This document shows positions 3,049-33,569 of a stretch of DNA of 64,000 bases, in pieces. The notes beneath the pieces are model-generated. The model had not been told where the DNA came from. It saw nothing but the letters and a program-made list of their open reading frames with translations, and searched no databases. This stretch comes from Epithemia pelagica (taxonomy: Eukaryota; Protista; Bacillariophyta). The stretch covers positions 3,286,001 through 3,350,000 of the forward strand of contig OX337237.1 in assembly GCA_946965045.2 (NCBI GenBank). Direction: 5' to 3'. A program made the translations under genes and the position numbers. Within the stretch, counting starts at the first letter, position 1; every line of letters begins with the position of its first letter.

Positions 3049-6000
3049 TCATAATTCCCTTGGTTTCACAACTGGTGCTTGCTCAGGAGATTGCTCAGGA
3101 GATTGCTCAGGAGCTTGTTCTGGAGACTTCTCCGGTGCTTGCTCTTTTAATACAGGAAGCATCTTCGACGGTACAATGCCCTGGTCCCGGAAATTCTGAA
3201 GCATTTCGGCAACAAGTTCTTGCCCCTTTAGTTCCCACTCCTTGCGATTCTGTACGGCATACTGCAAATACTCGTCTGATGACACACCAAAGACACCACA
3301 ATCTTTCAACTTCTTCGCCAAAGGAATGATGTAGAAATCGAAAAAGCCCTTTTCGCCTTCGTACCAAAAATCTGATGGGTTCTTTTCAGCCCGGCCTTGC
3401 AAGTAAGCCACATAAAGTTCCTTGAACAGGCGTTGGTTCCATTTTCGGTAGATGTGCCAATGCTGCATAGTGTGTGCAACATCCGAAGCCTGAATTAAAT
3501 GCTCCATGACAATAGTGGCTTTGCGATTCACATCATCCTCCGATGAATCTGACACCTCGTCAGAAAAGGCCTTGTTCCACCGGCCTTTACGAAGAGCAGC
3601 GAGATCCTTGTCCATAATGTCTGTCGCAAGTACAATGTTCACAACAAGCTGCCTGAAGCGCGTGAATTCGGAAGTCGTAGCATAGATGGTACGGCGAAGG
3701 TCACCGTACGCGTCATCCATAAGAAGATCCCATGCCAAATCCACAGAGTTCTGTTCCGCAATGGATTTGTTTCGATATACCGCAGCCAAAGTAGTTTGTT
3801 CCTTGATTAGTTGTGAATTCGGGACGCCTGGGTGGTCAGCGTCGTGAATGAGGGCCGACAGCGCAACTGCAAACTGAGTCATTGGATCGGAAGTAATCCC
3901 GTAAGTGTGATCATGGAGGGCTTCTTCCGTGTCTTTGGGCGCGGACGTGAGATCAGGAGCCACGATTCGCGACAGAAGCTTCATTACTGACATTGTAACG
4001 TGCGACGCATGCTCAAAGTTATGGAACGGGTTGTCTCGGTACATAGACGCGAGAGTCTGGACATAGTCTTTGAGTTGTCCCAAGACATCTTCACTGAGAT
4101 GAACCGACGACGGGTCAATCCTCTGTGCATTTGCTTCGTATTTCGGAAGACGTACAATCTCTTGGACTTCGCTCAACACATAACGGTTGGACCTGTACTT
4201 CTCCTCTATCTTTTTCATTTCACCAATATCATCAGGATCCGTCCGACGAGACTCCCTGCGTGCAACAATCTGAGTTAGTAGCTTGGACAAAATATCGCAA
4301 TTCCAGGCGACAAGTCGATTGTACTTGTCGGCAGAAGGGACAGCAGGCGCTGCGTTCAAAGCTTGTACTGCGGATGCCTCCTTGTGCTCGCTTTCATTTT
4401 CCATCTCTTCAGTGCTACCAGAACCAGTTGATGCTACCGCTTCTCCTGTGGCGTCCAACCAGTACGTCTGAAGCTCACCCTTTCCCTTAGCAACTACCGT
4501 CTCCCTTCGAGTGCGCAACCACTGCGACTTGCCAGCAGCAGCGAGCAAATCGGCAGTTTCTTGGGAAACGTGGATCTTGTTTGGCTGCCCTGTACTCTCC
4601 ATACGTGCGGTAGTGTTGACAGTGTCACCAAACAATTGGAATCGAGCACGCTCACCACGCAACACACCAGCTGTGACAGGACCAGAATGAAGACCAATCC
4701 TTACGCCGAGCTTTCTCAGGGAAAAGTTGTGAAAGGCAAACATGTTAACGACATATGTATATTCAAGGGAGGAACAGTATCCGGTGGACTTACCTCTTCC
4801 GTGTCGGGACCTAGCTCCACCACCATTGCCTTCATTGTGGCAGTAAATTGAACAAGACAGTCTCGAGCAAAGCGAGCCATTACGATCGCGTGATCCTTGC
4901 GAGGCTCTGGTAAGCCCGCAACTGCTACGTAGCAATCACCAACTGTCTCGACTTTGAAAACACGACGACGACCAGCAATTTCATCAAAGACGTGGTAAAT
5001 GGTTTCGAGAAGCTGGAAGACTTGAGTCGGTTCACGGGTCGAACTCCACGCAGTGAAACCGACGATATCAGCAAAAATAATGGTTGCTTCCGGGAAGAGG
5101 TCAGCAATCGGTTTCGATCTCTTGATCCCTGCTCTCGCGTCCTCATCTTCTTCATTAGCGTCTTTACCCTTAAGGAAATTTTGGAGCTGGTCTTTCGTCC
5201 GGTTTCCCCGCGTGGTTAGTTGCTTGTTCGCTTCTCGATTCACCTCTTCATCCACATCCTTCATGATTCGATCTTGCACGTTCTTCGGAAACAGTGAAGA
5301 CACAATCGCCTGGGTCTTGCGAGCTGCCCGAATGATCATCCACTGGCGCCTCTGAACGGCCCAGTCGTAAACAAGGAAAACAAATGTCGTAAAAACGAAG
5401 ATCGTTGCAACAACAATTGCATAGATGATGGGATCTCTCGATTCATAATCGTTTTCCAAGTCCCCGGTGGGATAAATATCAAGCACATAGTTACAGCTTG
5501 AATATGGCTGGCCACGCTCAGTATTGCTTCCATGTTCAGTAATATTGCTGGAGAGAACCTTGTCGTCGAAATCCGTGTCGTGCAAATCCCCCTCACCCTT
5601 CAGGTGGACATGAGGGCCCTGTACCAAGTATGTGAGTACACTGCCACAGGAATCAGATAATACAACTTCGATGTCACCGGCTCCTTCTGGAAGGACATCT
5701 TGAAAGAATACATCCCATTCAATGTCCAAGTAATGGAAGCCGACAACTTCACCTTGATCATCGGATTCACGGAAGATTGGATCCAGAAGAAAGCTGCGAG
5801 GATTTCCCGCAGAATGACTGGTTAGCTTTCGTTCCTGATGTGCGTGATCCTTTGTCTCGTACTCGAGTTCCGAGGGCTCCGGGAAGTACTGCATGATCGG
5901 AAGAGAATAAATCTTGGAGATATAACTGAAACGCTTCTTGACTACGTCTGTTGCAAGGCCGAAAAAGGTCCCGTCCGAAAGAAGGTCTGTATTGACCACT

Positions 6001-25219: not shown

Positions 25220-26413
25220 CACTGTGTCATTACAGATAGAGGGAAACAAACAACAACAACAAAATGGCTGGTCAGAATCCACACAAGAGGAACCAACGAC
25301 CGACATACCCCGAAACCGGCAACAGGTTCGTACCGTCAATGACACCTCCAAAACGGCCGAACATGGCCCATTTGCTGGAGTGGGATACTTTCAGGATTTG
25401 ATTGTAGCATCCCAAGCTCGATCCGCAATCATTAGTCGAGGTCGTAGTTCTTCGGCCTTATTGGATGAAATGATTGAATACGGCCGTCGTACCGAAGCAT
25501 GGGAACAAGGACACAAACGATTGCCCGATCCGATTATCCGATGCAGTATTGGAAGGAGAATTCCCGAAATACAGCGACGAGAAAAACAAAAAAGATCATC
25601 CGCAAAATTTTAGTATGGCCATTCATTATTCTTGCCAGTATTGTGGTGTTTGTTGTGGGCAAGAAACAACAACTCAATTGAGACCTTGTTTCGCCGTGAC
25701 TTTGGACCAACTGCTCCGGTAGTTACGGAGACCGGTAGTGGCGGAGAAGGACCAAGAAGATCTTCACCGCTTAGCTGGGAATGCCGAGATTCGTAGTGTG
25801 TGTTTGGCATTGCATCGAGGCTTTTACCCACAAGGGACCTGGGATACGACGGATAGCGATACTCTGTCCCCAATGACCCCTCGTTCCGAAGGGGACGCTG
25901 GGCACCGACCAATAATCAAATCGCCTCGATGCACAAACGACTCCTTATGGATGATTCCAACATGTGAACCATCAAAGTAATGAGAAGAGAAACGAGACGC
26001 GCTGTTACTCGACGGAGGAGATGACTAGGAGTAAACATTTTCTTCTTCCTCCAAAGGAGGACTGTCGTCGTTGTTGTTATTGGTTGGTTCTTCCATTCTA
26101 TCAAAAGTGGCTCTTTGATGTTTCTTTTCGCGAGGAATTGCTTGTAGGAAATATGAGAGGAGAGTGGACAAACGAAAGCGCTCTCTATATTATCTCTCTT
26201 TGGAATCTAGATGATTGGGCTCTGTTGTTCTCTCAATCGTACTGTTGATTGTCGCTCTCTCTCGCACTTTTGGAATGCCTTGGAGTGTTCCCTGACTGCC
26301 CTTGGAGTGTTCCTGTTGGATCCAGGGGCGTGGATGATCCATGATAACGATCCATGTCTCGGTTGTGCGTAAGACATGGTCACAATTTAATTGTGTCGGC
26401 AATCGGCAAGATC

Positions 26414-29400
26414 GAGAGGAGTGAAACGAGGGACTTTCATGAGAGACGTTCGGAGAAACTTTCAAAAAATAGACTGACATTCGGACAGACCATCCAGTGA
26501 CCGTCCATGTCTCCATTACTGACTTTTCTTAAATAAAATGACCCTAGTTGTCTTGTCAGTGCCACTTCAACTACATTCCCCAGTTTAACCCTATCCCTAA
26601 AAACGAAAGTTTCCCCGAATGTCTCTCATTTCGCTCTGAAGCCTTGAAAAAGTGAAATGAAAGACTTTCGGATAGCTTTTTGAGAGACGTTCGGAGTTTT
26701 AGGATAGCTTTTTGAGAGACGTTCAGGAAAACTTTTGATCAATGTACACTACTATACTAATGAACCCAACCAGCAACGAATTGTGGGCACAATACTAATG
26801 ACTCCCTACTCGTATACGTAAATGTAGAGATTATTAACATTTTAGTCTTGGTTTCTCATCTAATTGAATCTATTCATTGCTAAGTATATAACATTGGAAT
26901 ACGACTATTTAGCATTTCTTATTCTGTCCATGCTTTTTGCCATGATTGCAGCTAAATTGTCGCTAATCATTAGCGATCATCCTAGCAGACCGCATCTCCT
27001 TGCTTAGTTTCCATGCATGACATTGTCATAATTTCCGTTTACTTGGAAAGCGAGTCGAAGACTATAATCTTATTATTTTCTTTAACACATTCAGTTTTTA
27101 GTATCCACCGCTAATTCTGATATATCTGGTTGAAACTTGGGGCACAGTGAGGAGGAGGGATAACCGTGAGTTGGTACGGTGGTAGTGCTAAGGTCTAAGG
27201 GAGAAATATCTATCTATTGTAGATTCTAGCCTTGGAATGAGTGGTTTGTGCCCCTTGGAGTGTTGAATCGGTACACTGTTGCACTACGTCCAGCTGCCCT
27301 TAGGCGGTGACGCGACATAAGTAGAAATTCTTTTCTTCACACTACCTACGGTGACGAGCTACCTTGTCAGATACAATTATATCTTAGTTAGCTGGTCCTT
27401 TGTTTGTGGGTCAGGCGGTTCGCGCTAAGTCCTGATATCGCCACCTGATTGGTAAGGGAGGGGGATAACCACAACTCTGGACGAGAGGAGAATTTTCCAC
27501 TATTATTTAACTTTTATTTGAGCTCACCCAAAATACATACACAAACAAAATTTTAAATAATGACATCGAAACAAGGAGCAATGGAGCAAAATGATGAGAC
27601 TCAACAAAATATCAGTTCTTTCAACAATGGCCCAGATACTAACAACAATAGCCCGAATACAACGACAAACAGCAAACAGGATAACACAACAAAAACCATA
27701 CGGGTCGAAAATACGACCAATTACCCAAACAATAACTCTCGAGATTCCTTATACCAACAAATAGGCTCGATGCTACAGAAATTCAGTGAGACAGAAGGAT
27801 TGCCTATCTCCCTACCATCTAAGGATTTACTACATTCTATTATCTCTACCAATACCATGCTTGAAATGGAACATAGTCTTCAGAAGCATTCTCGTTTGGT
27901 ACAGAAATTTAGTACTATCATGCCGCACACAACGACTACATGCCCCGGACAACATCCCAGCACTCACCCAATCACATTGCCTTCCACTCCCAGAGAAAAA
28001 CCAACCACGTACCCTATCACAATGCCTTCAGTTACAAGAGAAATCCCAACCACAGACCCAATCACGTTGCCAGTAGACCACAAGGAACTAGATGATTCAG
28101 ACATGACAGAACCACAACAAATTCAACAAGATCCTTCCCACCAAATCCATTTGTCTCCCATCCAACCAGACATTGTTACCAATTCTCTTGCTTCTGACGT
28201 CCATGATCATCTTACATGGCCAAACAATGACATTGAATTTGACGTAAACAGAATTGATCTTCCAGACAATCAGCGACCAAGTTTTGGATATGCATTCTTT
28301 CACTTACACACAAAGAAAAAGTCACCAGCTGCTAGTGTCAAAACATATTACTGCCTCGGTGTGTATACGTGTCCTGATAAATCTTGTCATTTTACACAAA
28401 GACCAACCAAACCCAAAAATATGACTAGAGGTGGACAACCTCCTCTTCCAAAATACCGATGTCCAATCCATCCATCTCATACTTTGAAATGGATTCCCTG
28501 CAGAGGAGGTGAAAGTGCTAACAGTGCCACGCGCAAGTACATGAAAGATTCACCGTGTGTTCTAATTTCCACAAGCATTCAAGGTGATTCCACTATTTCA
28601 TTTTAACACTTTGGACAACATCATCATCCACGACCACCCAAATTACAACCCTCTATACAAGCTCTTTCAATGCTCTCAGATATTGTGAAAAAAATCCGCA
28701 TGCTGGTCCCCAACAGCTGCGTCTTGGGGATGAAACAAGAGAACCTGTAGACAACTTAGATGAATCATTTGCCAATAAACAACGACTAAAGTATCACAGG
28801 AACAAGATTTTAGCTCAAACACGGAAACCTCATGGAATACATGGAAGTATTGGTGCTCTTCTGCAAATGTCCAGAGATCTTGAAAAACTAAACCCACCTG
28901 TCACTTCTTTTCTTACTAAGGTAGAGCTGGTGAAACACGATGAGGCTATAATAACATTGCAGACTGACTATATGAGAGAGGTATTAAGAGAAGCATCTTG
29001 TGGACTACAGACCGACACTGTTGAGGGTGTTGTACATGATCCCGAGTACAATGGTTCCATAGATATTCACATTACTTCGAGCTTTGATTTTATCCTAGAA
29101 CGTTGGGTACCAGTTCTTATTTCATTCATATTCGGCCGTACCAAAAAACACTATGCATTGCACTGGAAAAGCTTGTTTGAAAGTTACGGTGAGGAAACAA
29201 ATAGCAGCTGGGACAGCTTTTCTGCAGCGTTTCCTGGAGTCACAATAGATTGGTCTGATGCTCTTCGATTCTCGTTTCAGGAAGTCTTACTGGAACACGC
29301 AACAAAGACTTTAAAGCACCCAAATGTTGAAAAAGATGACCTATATTCCTATTTAAGAAGCTGCAATGTTCATTTCCAGAGATCAGTAATGCGAATTGAA

Positions 29401-31444
29401 AGGAATGGTGCTGTTGTACCACCAGCAATGACATCACGCTTTAAGGGAATTGTTGACATGATGACGTCTCAGACCACCACCTTCCATGAATTTTCTCGTG
29501 CTTGTAGAGAAATGGCGTCTGAATTTCCAAAGGTGTCCCCATGGTTACAATGGTATTTGCACCCAGAACGAGCATCTGGATTCTTCCCTGCCTGTCAAAA
29601 ATTCACCAAAGAAGAGAAATCAAGATTCTCGAGGCTTTCTACCTCGACAAATGCACAGGAAAATGTCGGAAAACAGTTTCAATACTTGTTCATGAACAAA
29701 AACAGAAAGATGGGTGTCAATGAGTCCATTCTTGCAGCGTTCAAGTTTGTCAACAGATTCAAACTTGATCGAAGACTTACAGCCAGAGGTATGAGTACAG
29801 CGTATGCTCAATACCCACGGTTGGCTACTCCAAGGAAAAAAAGACACGTCAAGAATGATGGTCGAGCACCAGATACTAACAAAAGTCTGAGGATAGAAAA
29901 AAAACAAAAGAAGCTTGATTTACAGAACATCCCAGATGAATTTGTTCCATCAGATGAACAAGAGAGCAGAGACAAGAATGAGAAAACAAGTGTGCCACAA
30001 ACCAAAGAAGATAGCGACAACAACCAGAAACCAAATCCAGCCAGTACTCCTCCAGAAAACCGCATTGAACAGAGCAATTATCAAGACACTCTCAGTGTGA
30101 ATGATATGATTTACCATAGTCGGGTCGGTATTGATGTTGTCAAAGACTTGAGAGTCGAATCACACAGGTCAAGGATTGTCGAAGTGAGAGCACTTCCTGA
30201 TGACTCCTTTGATGACGACGACGATGTCATCATTGTGGAGACAGTTCTTGGCTGTCTTGGTCTACAAAGTGATGCAGTTGTATCCAAAAAACCAAACTCC
30301 AGAGGAAAGGCAATAAAATACTTTACTTTAATTCCGGGAGTAGACGAGACTCCTATTAGTCAGACTTCGTTGTTCAGAGCTGCTGCACATGCAGCAGAAG
30401 AGATGGAACAGGAAGCATCGAGATTCAGTTTAAATGGTTGATACTGATGAATCAGCAATTTAATGGGAAAAGCTATTGGAAATGGATAATGTGGTGAGAT
30501 ACCAGCACACGACAAACACAACGAGCATGTCAAAGTCGTTGAGGCAACTGTCCCAAGAAATATCAGGAAGAAAAGAAAAGAAAAATACTGACAAGAAACA
30601 AAGTAACTCAGAACAAATGACTATTTCTCACTGGAGAAGTAATCAACCAAAGAGTGCATCAAAACAACGAATCCCAAAAGGGTTCTCCCTTCGACAAAAG
30701 GTACCATCACGTGGCAGACGAGCAAAATGTGCAGGCTGCGACAAATTGATTGCTTACGTAGATTGTTGCATCAGGCACAGGTACAGGAAAGTAGAACAAT
30801 TTGAATATGATGATGTTAAAAATTACCATTGTCGAGCAAAGTGCTTGGTGAAGATGAAGCCCGAACATCTTGTCATGTTTGTGGACAAGAAATGGATTGA
30901 GCCAGATGTTGTTCGCGTTGTGAAAGAAATTCAACATTTGTGCAAGAAAGTTTAGGAAGGAAAAATCAATTGTGTGTGCAGCAGTAACTAGTTATATGAA
31001 TTTTCTATAGTACCAATCATTTCTATGTGATGTTTATCAAATAAGTTTTGAATTATGAAAAATAGGAACACTCAAAGTCAGATGCGCAGTGCTGGGACAT
31101 AAGATTGGTAAACCAGAGTTCCCCACTCTACATCCGCAAGCAATGTGCATATGTCTTTAGGATAAATTGTTTGGAATCGTCATTGTGATAAAAACTGGGG
31201 CTCGTCTAGATTGACAAAGCGTGGTGAAGGTGCTCGTATGCCTAGCTGGGGTAGAGTTTTAGGACTTTCCTTGGCGCTCTAAATGGACCAGAAGAGGGGC
31301 TATACGTCTGTCCATTGCTGGTATCCGGCCCTATTATAGTAATGTAAAAACAATGCCCAAAGAAAATTCTCGTAGCGTAAAAAAACTATTTATCCGAAAG
31401 TCCTTCTGAATGTCCCTCTAAAAGTCCCTCATTTCACTATTCCC
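26414..31444 (+). mobile_element. Mutator-like (MULE) DNA transposon, 5031 bp, decayed autonomous element
   Basis: 9-bp TSD GGCAAGATC at 26405-26413 and 31445-31453. Imperfect ~55-bp TIRs (GAGAGGAGTGAAACGAGGGACTTTC.. vs revcomp GGGAATAGTGAAATGAGGGACTTTT..). Internal DDE transposase. Confidence 0.88.
27560..30955 (+). pseudogene. MULE transposase pseudogene: GCM-like Zn domain, DDE core, and C-terminal PARP-like Zn finger; interrupted by TAA 28604, a -1 frameshift at A7 28688-28694, a +1 frameshift near 30437 and TAA 30461
   Basis: YYCLGVYTCP..RP..CPIHP..LKWIPCRG..F*HFGQHHHPRP (GCM-like). Core motifs LQTD, TIDWS, CNVHF and TNAQE (D, D, CxxH, E). C-terminal KCAGCDKLI..YHCRAKC. Confidence 0.8.
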
Positions 31445-33569
31445 GGCAAGATCAATCCACACGGTTCCCGACGCGACGTCGTCGATCCTATCACAGACTA
31501 TGGGATAAAAGGTAGTACTGTAGACTGAAAATGTAGCGGTCGCTCTTAGATCGCCCGCATCCAGACCCTTCGTCAGTAGGACTGGCGTGCTGCTTCCGTG
31601 TTCCCGACGCTTCGATTCGCGAGAAGAGAATAAGACGGTCGGATTTTCCAGTAATAGGTAGGTAGACTACCATATAATGTCATTGGTACAGATCGTTTGG
31701 TGTGGTTGAGGCACTCCAAGGATCATGTCCAAGATGACAACAAGAGGAATGCATGGGAAGGTGTCGGAACCATCGTGAAGGATCGTTCTCTACTAGAACG
31801 CCCTTTAAGTGCAGTCATGGTATATACTGTGGGCAAGTTGGTTCCCTCTGTCTGCTACGGGAGAGAGAAGCCGTCCAGTTGTCGCCAAATCGAGTTCCCA
31901 CCGCACGTCTGTGCGATCTAGACGAGAATGAGTACCGTTGAATGTTGGTTGGTTGACGTTTCGTACTATCCAGATTGCGTGTTTCGTGGGTGAAAAAAGG
32001 CAGGGCGGTTGGCAGTTCCTTTTTCTCGACAGGACAGTGTGACACTCTGGAGAGTGTGACTGTTTCCTAGGGTGATATTTTGGGGAACGTCCCTGAGGGT
32101 CTACGACAATTTGCTTAGTCCATGTCGCTGTCTTTATTCTTTACAAACCATGACTTTACCTCAAGTGTCACTGTTCGAGAGTTGTCTCAATCATAGAGAT
32201 TCGAGAATTGTCCCAAAATTTCAACGAGGCAAACCAAAGCATCTACGGAGTAGCATGAATCAAATTGGACACTATCGTACGTTGCTAGAGCAGTTATAGG
32301 TTCTTACCGCATGACATGTGGATGGTTCTTATTCATTCGAATACACCATTATTAGAATACAAAATAGTGCGAGAAATAAGATCTTTGTGATCGTGACCGG
32401 CAATAGACGGAAGTCAACTTTGGTATGGAAGTCAGATGGGAGACAAGCTGGGAGTCTACTAGGCCGGAATGCTGTTAGCTTCCACGACACAAGACAAACA
32501 GATGACGATGAATAGGATAACAACAATAACATTCGTAGAATCATAATTTTTGGGGAAGGCCAGTCCAGAAATGATCTTAGATGATTCGAAGTGAAAGAGA
32601 TTGCTCAAGACAACAATCGCTCTCTATCGAAGTGTGTTGTGTGTCTCTCTATGGAATGCCTTGGAGTGTTCCCACTCGATCCTGGACTTTCCCCATCACC
32701 ACACAAACAACAACAGAATCTCTCGATGTTGCTACAACCTTCCTAGTTCGCCCGAGTCGTTATTTTCTCTCGTCTTTGTGCGTCACCTTTGCCATTCTAC
32801 AAAAGTATATGAGCAAAAGGAGGCAATCCAAGCCCATGCCAACCAAGGAGGTTGCCGGAACCGTCGTGAAGGATCATTGCTCTCTCTCTCTCTTGTTTCT
32901 TCTGGTTGCTCCATTGGCCAAGTACATGTACTTTCTCTGCCTGATTTGTCGAGAGTCGTGCCGGATGGTACGATGATACACTGCGACCAACTAGGTATAC
33001 TAGCAACAAGGAATGGCCCAACTCTCTTTCATGGTCATGCAACGAATCAGACTTGCAAAGCTGGCTCAAAAGGACCAAGCGACTGGAGGCATGCGCCGAC
33101 GGCCATGAGGGTCGACACGGGATCTGGCACTCTTCTTGTTGTTGTTGTTGTTGTTGAAGAAGAAGAAGAAGAAGACTCATGGTCCATGCCACAACATGGG
33201 ACCTGAAGCAATCGATGACGACAAGTCCGAGCGGACAATGTGGCACATGGATACGAATGCTCTTGTTCCGTACCGAATTCTGCATCCGAACGGATCGAAT
33301 GACGCGCATGGTCAAGGAGGTACTTTCCTTATCCATTGTTCATGAAAGTCCATCACCAAAGACGATTTCTACTCCACGGCTTGCGTAGTATGCAGCTTTC
33401 ATGATGAACACACAACAAGCTTCAAAGAGAGAAGGTAGTCCTTGTGTTCTCGCGCAACAAGAGGTTTCAGTCCACTTGTGCGTGTTTGTCAGTCGTTTCC
33501 GACTCGCGCGTCGCTTTCCATTCACGCTTGTTTTAGAAATGTGGCCTCTCGAATCGGGTTCCTTCGTTC

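Follow-up and report, generated by a model that had tools for sequence, protein, structure and literature searches.

Positions 26414–31444 of the DNA stretch presented above (64,000 nucleotides of contig OX337237.1, hereafter the window, to which all coordinates refer) very probably hold a defective, internally deleted DNA transposon of the Mutator superfamily (Mutator-like element, MULE) and of the MuDRF type, resident in a eukaryotic and apparently diatom genome. The element is 5,031 bp long. What is left of its transposase gene combines a GCM-type zinc DNA-binding domain with a downstream DDE transposase core, between terminal inverted repeats and a 9-bp target-site duplication. These assignments had already been made in a preliminary description of this DNA and are borne out here: that of the domain by a profile match with mouse GCM1 (PDB entry 1ODH) and by the predicted fold of a relative, that of the core by fold matches with the ISCth4 transposase and with MULE clusters, and that of the borders by the repeated duplication and by other copies of the element. 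The same description had considered the family as possibly undescribed, and on this point it has to be corrected, since MuDRF elements are already defined by a GCM domain, a DDE core and a 9-bp duplication (PMC3164196). Given this same architecture, the kind of element is known and, according to the literature searched, probably the host group alone is new. The features of the element, with the evidence used for each, are the following.

26405–26413, plus strand: left 9-bp target-site duplication GGCAAGATC (same letters as 31445–31453)
26414–26463, plus strand: left terminal inverted repeat, starting with GAGAGGAGTGAAA / GAGAGGAGTGAAACGAGGGACTTT (inverted-repeat search, end alignment)
26431–26725, plus strand: subterminal repeats of the motif [AG]GAC[TG]TTC (motif search)
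27560–28606, plus strand: open reading frame 1 (ORF1), 348 aa, with a Thr/Pro-rich N-terminal region and most of the GCM-type domain (translation)
28196–28690, plus strand: GCM-type zinc DNA-binding domain, split by the TAA at 28604–28606 (alignments, 1ODH profile match, fold); ligand codons C 28352, C 28370, C 28385, C 28460, H 28469, C 28499, H 28619 and H 28625
28604–28606, plus strand: premature stop TAA, which is CGT (Arg) in the intact relative L002 (codon comparison)
28686–28692, plus strand: frameshift, a run of 7 A compared with 8 A in L002 (sequence comparison)
28693–29934, plus strand: DDE transposase core, Mutator/IS256 type (alignment A3, model, ESM Atlas, PDB fold matches); core codons D 29014, D 29248, C 29362 and H 29371 (CxxH), and E 29659
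29935–30431, plus strand: low-complexity linker, up to the deletion joint (tblastn with the related proteins P0188 and P0002)
30431–30432, plus strand: deletion joint, with about 954 bp missing (318 codons, USP-like module) and a change of frame (blastn against the related copies L001 and L002)
30434–30955, plus strand: C-terminal remainder with a CxxC...H-x4-C zinc finger, weakly PARP-like (alignment A5); finger codons C 30728, C 30737, H 30827 and C 30842
31391–31444, minus strand: right terminal inverted repeat, reverse complement GGGAATAGTGAAA / GGGAATAGTGAAATGAGGGACTTT (inverted-repeat search, end alignment)
31445–31453, plus strand: right 9-bp target-site duplication GGCAAGATC (direct repeat of the left one)

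ORF1, the product of which, beginning at Met8, is protein P0036, closes at the premature TAA. Reading through this stop, the frame-1 translation of 27560–30955 gives YYCLGVYTCPDKSCHF..RP..YRCPIHPSHTLKWIPCRGG..PCVL..ISF, stop, HFGQHHHPRPP, thus recovering the GCM pattern that had been reported for it. In an alignment with 13 intact relatives the two window pieces flank the stop and retain all the near-invariant columns (six Cys, two Gly, two His and two Pro). In GCM domains the core zinc site takes one Cys from the end of strand 2, a second from the start of strand 3 and the HxH from the end of strand 4. This site, formed here by C54, C104, H143 and H145 (numbered according to residues 85–255 of the relative P0006), is invariant in 94 of 94 sequences and aligns to the Cys of CLGV, the Cys of IPC and the HDH of 1ODH; the corresponding window codons are those at 28352, 28499, 28619 and 28625. 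In the zinc-ribbon insert, to which four further ligands belong (Babu et al. 2006), C60 and C65 are invariant and C91 is nearly so, followed by the His of CPxH; these ligands align to the VVC, DC and CPNC of 1ODH, the insert reading here as C-x4-C ... C-x2-H, with the final Cys replaced by His. The domain is predicted to bind two zinc ions, one through the core site and one through the insert.

An exhaustive profile search with the domain returned 416 representatives at E<=0.001 (clusters at 50% identity), from which a profile of 94 rows was drawn. Against the PDB, this profile matched 1ODH with E=1e-15 (61 bits, chain residues 33–172), and the same structure had been the top match of smaller profiles of 6 rows (E=3.3e-4) and 15 rows (E=2.3e-4). 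The Pfam GCM family (PF03615) was matched by 31 of the 94 domains at E<=0.01, with no other DNA-binding family matched, and its gathering score (25 bits) was reached by two of them, P0094 (28.4 bits) and P0115 (25.3 bits). In accordance with the profiles, the AlphaFold model of P0006:85–255 (predicted local distance difference test, pLDDT, 89.8; predicted template modelling score, pTM, 0.82) had 1odh_A as its sole PDB match at E<=0.001 in Foldseek (7.4e-6; TM 0.51/0.55), and VIA-align superposed the two with Z 11.1 and a root-mean-square deviation of 3.2 A over 128 residues, as against Z 4.7–7.1 over 60–78 residues for WRKY domains and about 3.9 for NAC domains. Since the alignment to 1ODH takes in both the WRKY-like core site and the GCM-specific insert lying between the core cysteines, the N-terminal domain is, as judged from profiles and model, GCM-type and not just WRKY-like. 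Searched singly against the PDB, the window piece retrieved antibody light chains only, a spurious result produced by the string YYCLG.Y.C, and a word-based homologue search with the GCM region of P0006 returned the query alone.

Downstream of this domain, the 15 rows of alignment A3 share a near-invariant D106 in LQ[ST]D[TS]VEG and, as invariant positions, D184 in DWS, C222..H225 in CxVHF and E321 in TNAQE[NS]. In the model of the core (pLDDT 80) the first D is placed on strand 1, the second just past strand 4, the C..H pair after strand 5 and the E on the helix after the insertion domain, itself all-helical; this corresponds to the usual DDE transposase layout, with putative catalytic roles for D, D and E. 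The nearest ESM Atlas clusters by shape are MULE, SWIM, FLYWCH and Transposase_mut clusters (TM by query 0.50–0.64, over 258–313 residues) and the language-model neighbours of the core agree, being MULE-type clusters; the nearest cluster by features, which gives an indirect hint of kinship with the MuDRF elements, is a Basidiomycota cluster without a family name (score 0.96). The best PDB matches found by Foldseek are complexes of the ISCth4 transposase (E 1e-4 to 1.5e-3, probability 1.0). ISCth4 belongs to the IS256 family, the bacterial kin of the MULEs. Based on the fold neighbours and on the 9-bp duplication, the core is best placed, at the level of sequence and model comparison, as a divergent branch of the Mutator/IS256 superfamily. 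Proteins that were retrieved by the GCM profile alone have the same DDE core downstream (with E-values from a very small database), and the order GCM then DDE thus appears as a feature of the family.

Terminal inverted repeats and a duplication within the 8–11 bp expected of Mutator elements are both present. A C stands before both copies of GGCAAGATC, and the left border is therefore uncertain by 1 nt. The same borders are indicated by contigs of other copies, from sequencing runs of the same organism, which leave the window match at 26412/26414 and at 31442/31444. Moreover, the related copies L001 and L002 have the same termini and are flanked by other 9-bp duplications, CATCACGAA and GATCCACGA, respectively. 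The motif [AG]GAC[TG]TTC has seven matches in the window, six of them within the element and five within 26431–26725, i.e., in its first 310 bp; these repeats are candidate binding sites of the transposase. The G+C content is 41–43% at about 26–32 kb, compared with 47–52% in the flanks. At 33340–33354, 1.9 kb past the element, 15 nt match the reverse complement of the core of the left repeat (TCATGAAAGTCCATC) and may be a piece of the end of another copy.

When searched by tblastn with intact relatives, the window copy appears as three pieces in differing frames. Contigs with zero differences, from two runs, span the TAA (27832–28648), and zero-difference contigs likewise span the deletion joint (30265–30661), where the contigs of related copies hold 953 additional letters (at 30431/30432). 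It had been suggested that the reading frame 27560–30955 could be repaired: the read-through of the stop does give the domain, but no single ORF is obtained in that way, owing to the A-run frameshift and the deletion. As a consequence of the stop, of the 1-bp loss and of the deletion, no transposase is to be expected from the window copy. Between the window and L002, the DDE part shows 55 synonymous and 48 non-synonymous codon differences, so that much of their divergence arose under selection. With or without a real lesion in the A-run, the window copy is dead and has no function except as the mark of an insertion.

Three other explanations were weighed against that of a dead MuDRF-type element. 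The N-terminal domain might be a generic WRKY/FLYWCH-type MULE finger, with a GCM motif that is only superficial. WRKY domains are indeed the next-best matches, both in the structural superposition (Z 5–7 over 60–78 residues) and in the 94-row search, where 7d11 follows 1ODH at E=0.04, and the window pieces themselves are without a Pfam GCM match. However, the E-value of GCM1 is better by 13 orders of magnitude, its alignment covers 128 residues including the insert compared with 74 for WRKY, and none of the 94 domains is matched by WRKY or FLYWCH models, whereas 31 match Pfam GCM; we thus regard a generic finger as very unlikely. Still less credit can be given to a DDE core from another superfamily sharing the RNase H fold (hAT, P, Transib/RAG-like, or one without a name). 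No member scanned matched Pfam MULE or Transposase_mut, and Hermes, the P element and Transib do occur in the Foldseek list, but they rank behind ISCth4, with E 0.05 or worse and a probability <=0.41, as against about 1e-4 and 1.0. All the named Atlas neighbours are MULE, SWIM or Transposase_mut clusters, the 9-bp duplication suits Mutator, and MuDRF has been tied to MuDR by PSI-BLAST (PMC3164196).

The remaining explanation holds that the locus is functional, either as an autonomous transposase or as a domesticated transcription factor of GCM type, with the stop and the frameshift as assembly errors or bypassed by read-through or by an intron. It would be in accordance with the position of the frameshift in an A7 homopolymer, a typical site of long-read errors, and with the codon differences reported above, which point to a divergence largely under selection. 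Nevertheless, we consider it highly improbable, given that contigs from separate runs cross the TAA and the deletion joint with zero differences, that the deletion takes 318 codons and shifts the frame, that repeats and duplication are kept as in an ordinary insertion, and that no run containing the locus is recorded as RNA. As for an intron skipping the TAA, the sole GT..AG pair would also cut out the conserved GxHxHP (HxH), and this candidate was rejected.

Some results weigh against the assignment to a dead MuDRF-type element and have to be set beside it. A Pfam scan of the window's own pieces found no match to any family, the window product lying below the GCM gathering score; the intact P0188 and the rest of the window's subfamily matched neither Pfam GCM nor MULE; and in the scans of 18 relatives the only GCM match was a sub-threshold one, for P0026. 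Likewise, neither MULE (PF10551) nor Transposase_mut (PF00872) matched the window ORF at 28867–30441 or these 18 relatives. The Pfam check proposed in the preliminary description therefore succeeded for GCM through the 31 matching relatives, and failed for the window pieces and for MULE. Because the window's subfamily has no Pfam match, its membership in the GCM family is argued through intermediate sequences and through the predicted structures of relatives, not from the window's own product. Furthermore, the second zinc site is C-x2-H and not C-x2-C as in animal GCM, and the inverted repeats of the window copy are short and imperfect, with 20 of 24 bases agreeing at the tips in the end alignment. 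The comparison with MuDRF is one with its published description. Concerning the lesions, no zero-difference contig among the runs of the same organism crosses the A-run, for which reason the difference between A7 and A8 could have arisen in the assembly as a homopolymer error. Finally, the contig runs may come from the assembly's own sample, in which case they speak for the sequence as real DNA and not as evidence from independent strains.

Among intact proteins P0188 (1,395 aa) comes closest, with 90% identity over 28687–30432. It is encoded by a 7.1-kb full-length element (L002:1054–8146, from ERZ21939226, ctg1346l) whose inverted repeats extend over some 50 bp, with matching subterminal repeats, and which has its own duplication. 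An intact relative, in the line of the search for intact copies recommended in the preliminary description, was thus found, and the L002 element is likely the autonomous partner of the dead copy in the window. A second relative, L001:5527–10151, is a deletion derivative with the opposite defect: it retains the USP-like module, whereas the GCM domain is lost altogether and the DDE core over its first half, and its right end is shortened. GCM and DDE stand in one protein in the intact relatives P0188, P0018, P0019 and P0021–24, intact relatives being one long transposase of 1,190–1,400 aa, and one relative is labelled as Attheya sp., a diatom, a label on which the reading of the host as a diatom in part depends. 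Among the matches of the GCM-profile search listed, 150 of 150 resemble transposases of the GCM-Mutator family.

In the relatives, the part lost from the window at the deletion joint is a USP-like module showing two boxes, NTCxLDSFL and GxHFTAVxRCPxGWMHYDG, which recall the Cys and His boxes of USP. Its language-model neighbours include PF00443 clusters, and a PDB profile search with the module found nothing significant (USP12 at E=8.7); judging by the box consensus and by these neighbours, the module is reminiscent of USP. The finger that follows, C-x2-C-x29-H-x4-C in the ORF 30476–30955, is kept in 11 sequences; the pattern of the PARP type is C-x2-C-x28-30-H-x2-C (Pfam PF00645). PARP1 fingers are the top PDB matches of the finger profile, although weak (E=0.03–0.3), and Pfam zf-PARP matches the relatives under its cut-off (E=0.011–0.18). 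Of the long proteins retrieved by the GCM profile, P0071, P0078, P0089, P0094, P0130, P0135 and P0145 all match the USP-like module and all except P0130 match the finger profile (with E-values from a tiny database); the USP-like module and the finger thus look family-wide.

Further observations concern other parts of the family. The GCM domain is preceded by repeats of some 25 aa, rich in Thr and Pro (..PREKPTT.PIT.P..), at 27930–28090 in the window and at 3700–3925 in L002, with a higher copy number in the intact P0188. The top match of the GCM profile, P0028 (1,175 aa), has three GCM-type domains, with CLGV at 385, 592 and 850, and no match to the DDE profile. It may be a multi-domain derivative that is not a transposase, comparable to the Mutyl ORFs with several WRKY domains (Babu et al. 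2006), or else a chimeric gene model. As to the element ends, summed contig depth, which is not equivalent to copy number, is 10- to 100-fold higher at 26477–26830 and 31079–31432 than in the middle, and contigs join 27703 to 30729 and 26721 to 31325. These additional joints and the end-heavy depth suggest that the organism has many short derivatives with these ends, resembling miniature inverted-repeat transposable elements.

Taken at the level of the family, the intact transposase consists, in order, of a GCM-type domain with two predicted zinc sites, an IS256/MULE-type DDE core, a USP-like module and, at the C-terminus, a zinc finger. Recognition of the terminal and subterminal repeats is presumably the task of the GCM-type domain, while the DDE core would excise the element and insert it through a 9-bp staggered cut. 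By this route the window copy was inserted, leaving a duplication that is still perfect. It later acquired the stop inside the GCM domain, the 1-bp loss and a deletion by which about 954 bp, and with them the USP-like module, were lost. From then on it may have been movable only with the enzyme of an intact copy, supplied in trans.

MuDRF was described by Cantu et al. 2011 (PLoS One 6:e24230, PMC3164196) as a distant branch of MuDR, with a single protein in which a GCM domain "specific for MuDRF elements" is combined with the DDE domain, and with hosts among several Basidiomycota and in Naegleria gruberi. A GCM domain followed by a MuDR-related DDE core in one protein, together with the 9-bp duplication (Repbase MuDRF-1_PSt etc.), are all found here. 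MuDRF, however, has been reported outside stramenopiles, and its description comprises GCM and DDE only, whereas every long relative identified here adds the USP-like module and the C-terminal finger. In the literature search, no paper besides Cantu et al. 2011 tied GCM to Mutator elements and no report of MuDRF from diatoms was found; a diatom MuDRF entry may already be present in Repbase. Diatom MULEs have been published, i.e., group 37 "MULE-Diatoms" of Dupeyron et al. 2019 and the UMPS-disrupting MULE of Phaeodactylum (bioRxiv 2023.01.02.522487). They resemble the window element in host group, provided that its genome is that of a diatom, in superfamily and, in the case of the Phaeodactylum element, in the 9-bp duplication, but they have Pfam-detectable MULE and SWIM domains, one of them with a separate gene for a UBR-type E3 ligase, and neither paper mentions GCM.

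With classical MULE and IS256 transposases (PF10551, PF00872; ISCth4 6XGX, 6XG8) the window element and its relatives share a DDE core of the RNase H fold whose insertion domain is all-helical, the CxxH after strand 5, the TNxxE motif, terminal inverted repeats and the 9-bp duplication. They differ from them in being too divergent for the Pfam models, in the absence of a SWIM finger, in the shortness of the inverted repeats and in a DNA-binding domain that is GCM-type rather than WRKY, FLYWCH or FAR1. With animal GCM (mouse GCM1, 1ODH, PF03615) the likeness concerns the whole domain, which aligns with CLGVxxC, RP, CPx[CH], IPC.G and GxHxHP.P. Here, however, the domain lies within a transposase, whereas animal GCM is a stand-alone regulator; identity to GCM1 is about 20–23%, His takes the place of Cys as fourth ligand of the insert, and an extra loop with a conserved Cys follows IPC.GG.

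The finding extends the host range of MuDRF to a diatom-like genome. As Pfam is blind here to both GCM and MULE, standard annotation would leave such elements unnamed, and the alignments and profiles produced in this study can be used for annotating them. It also adds material on the origin of the animal GCM domain, of whose proposed transposon source the preliminary description took the element to be a putative relic, without settling the question. Babu et al. 2006 placed GCM1 within a WRKY-GCM1 superfamily and thought the family to be animal-only and derived from an insert-containing, MULE-associated relative; they described the insert as a GCM-specific zinc ribbon. A broader and more tentative proposal, which we see as a real possibility although somewhat short of probable, is that GCM Mutators are a large, old and widespread lineage (stramenopiles, fungi, Heterolobosea), that the insert arose in transposons, that a domesticated transposase of the MuDRF type was the ancestor of the animal GCM factors and that the diatom clade is an undescribed subfamily. 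If this were true, the diatom clade would be set apart by its C-x2-H ligand and by its USP-like and finger modules, and the zinc-ribbon insert of GCM would be of transposon origin, and not animal as Babu et al. 2006 proposed.

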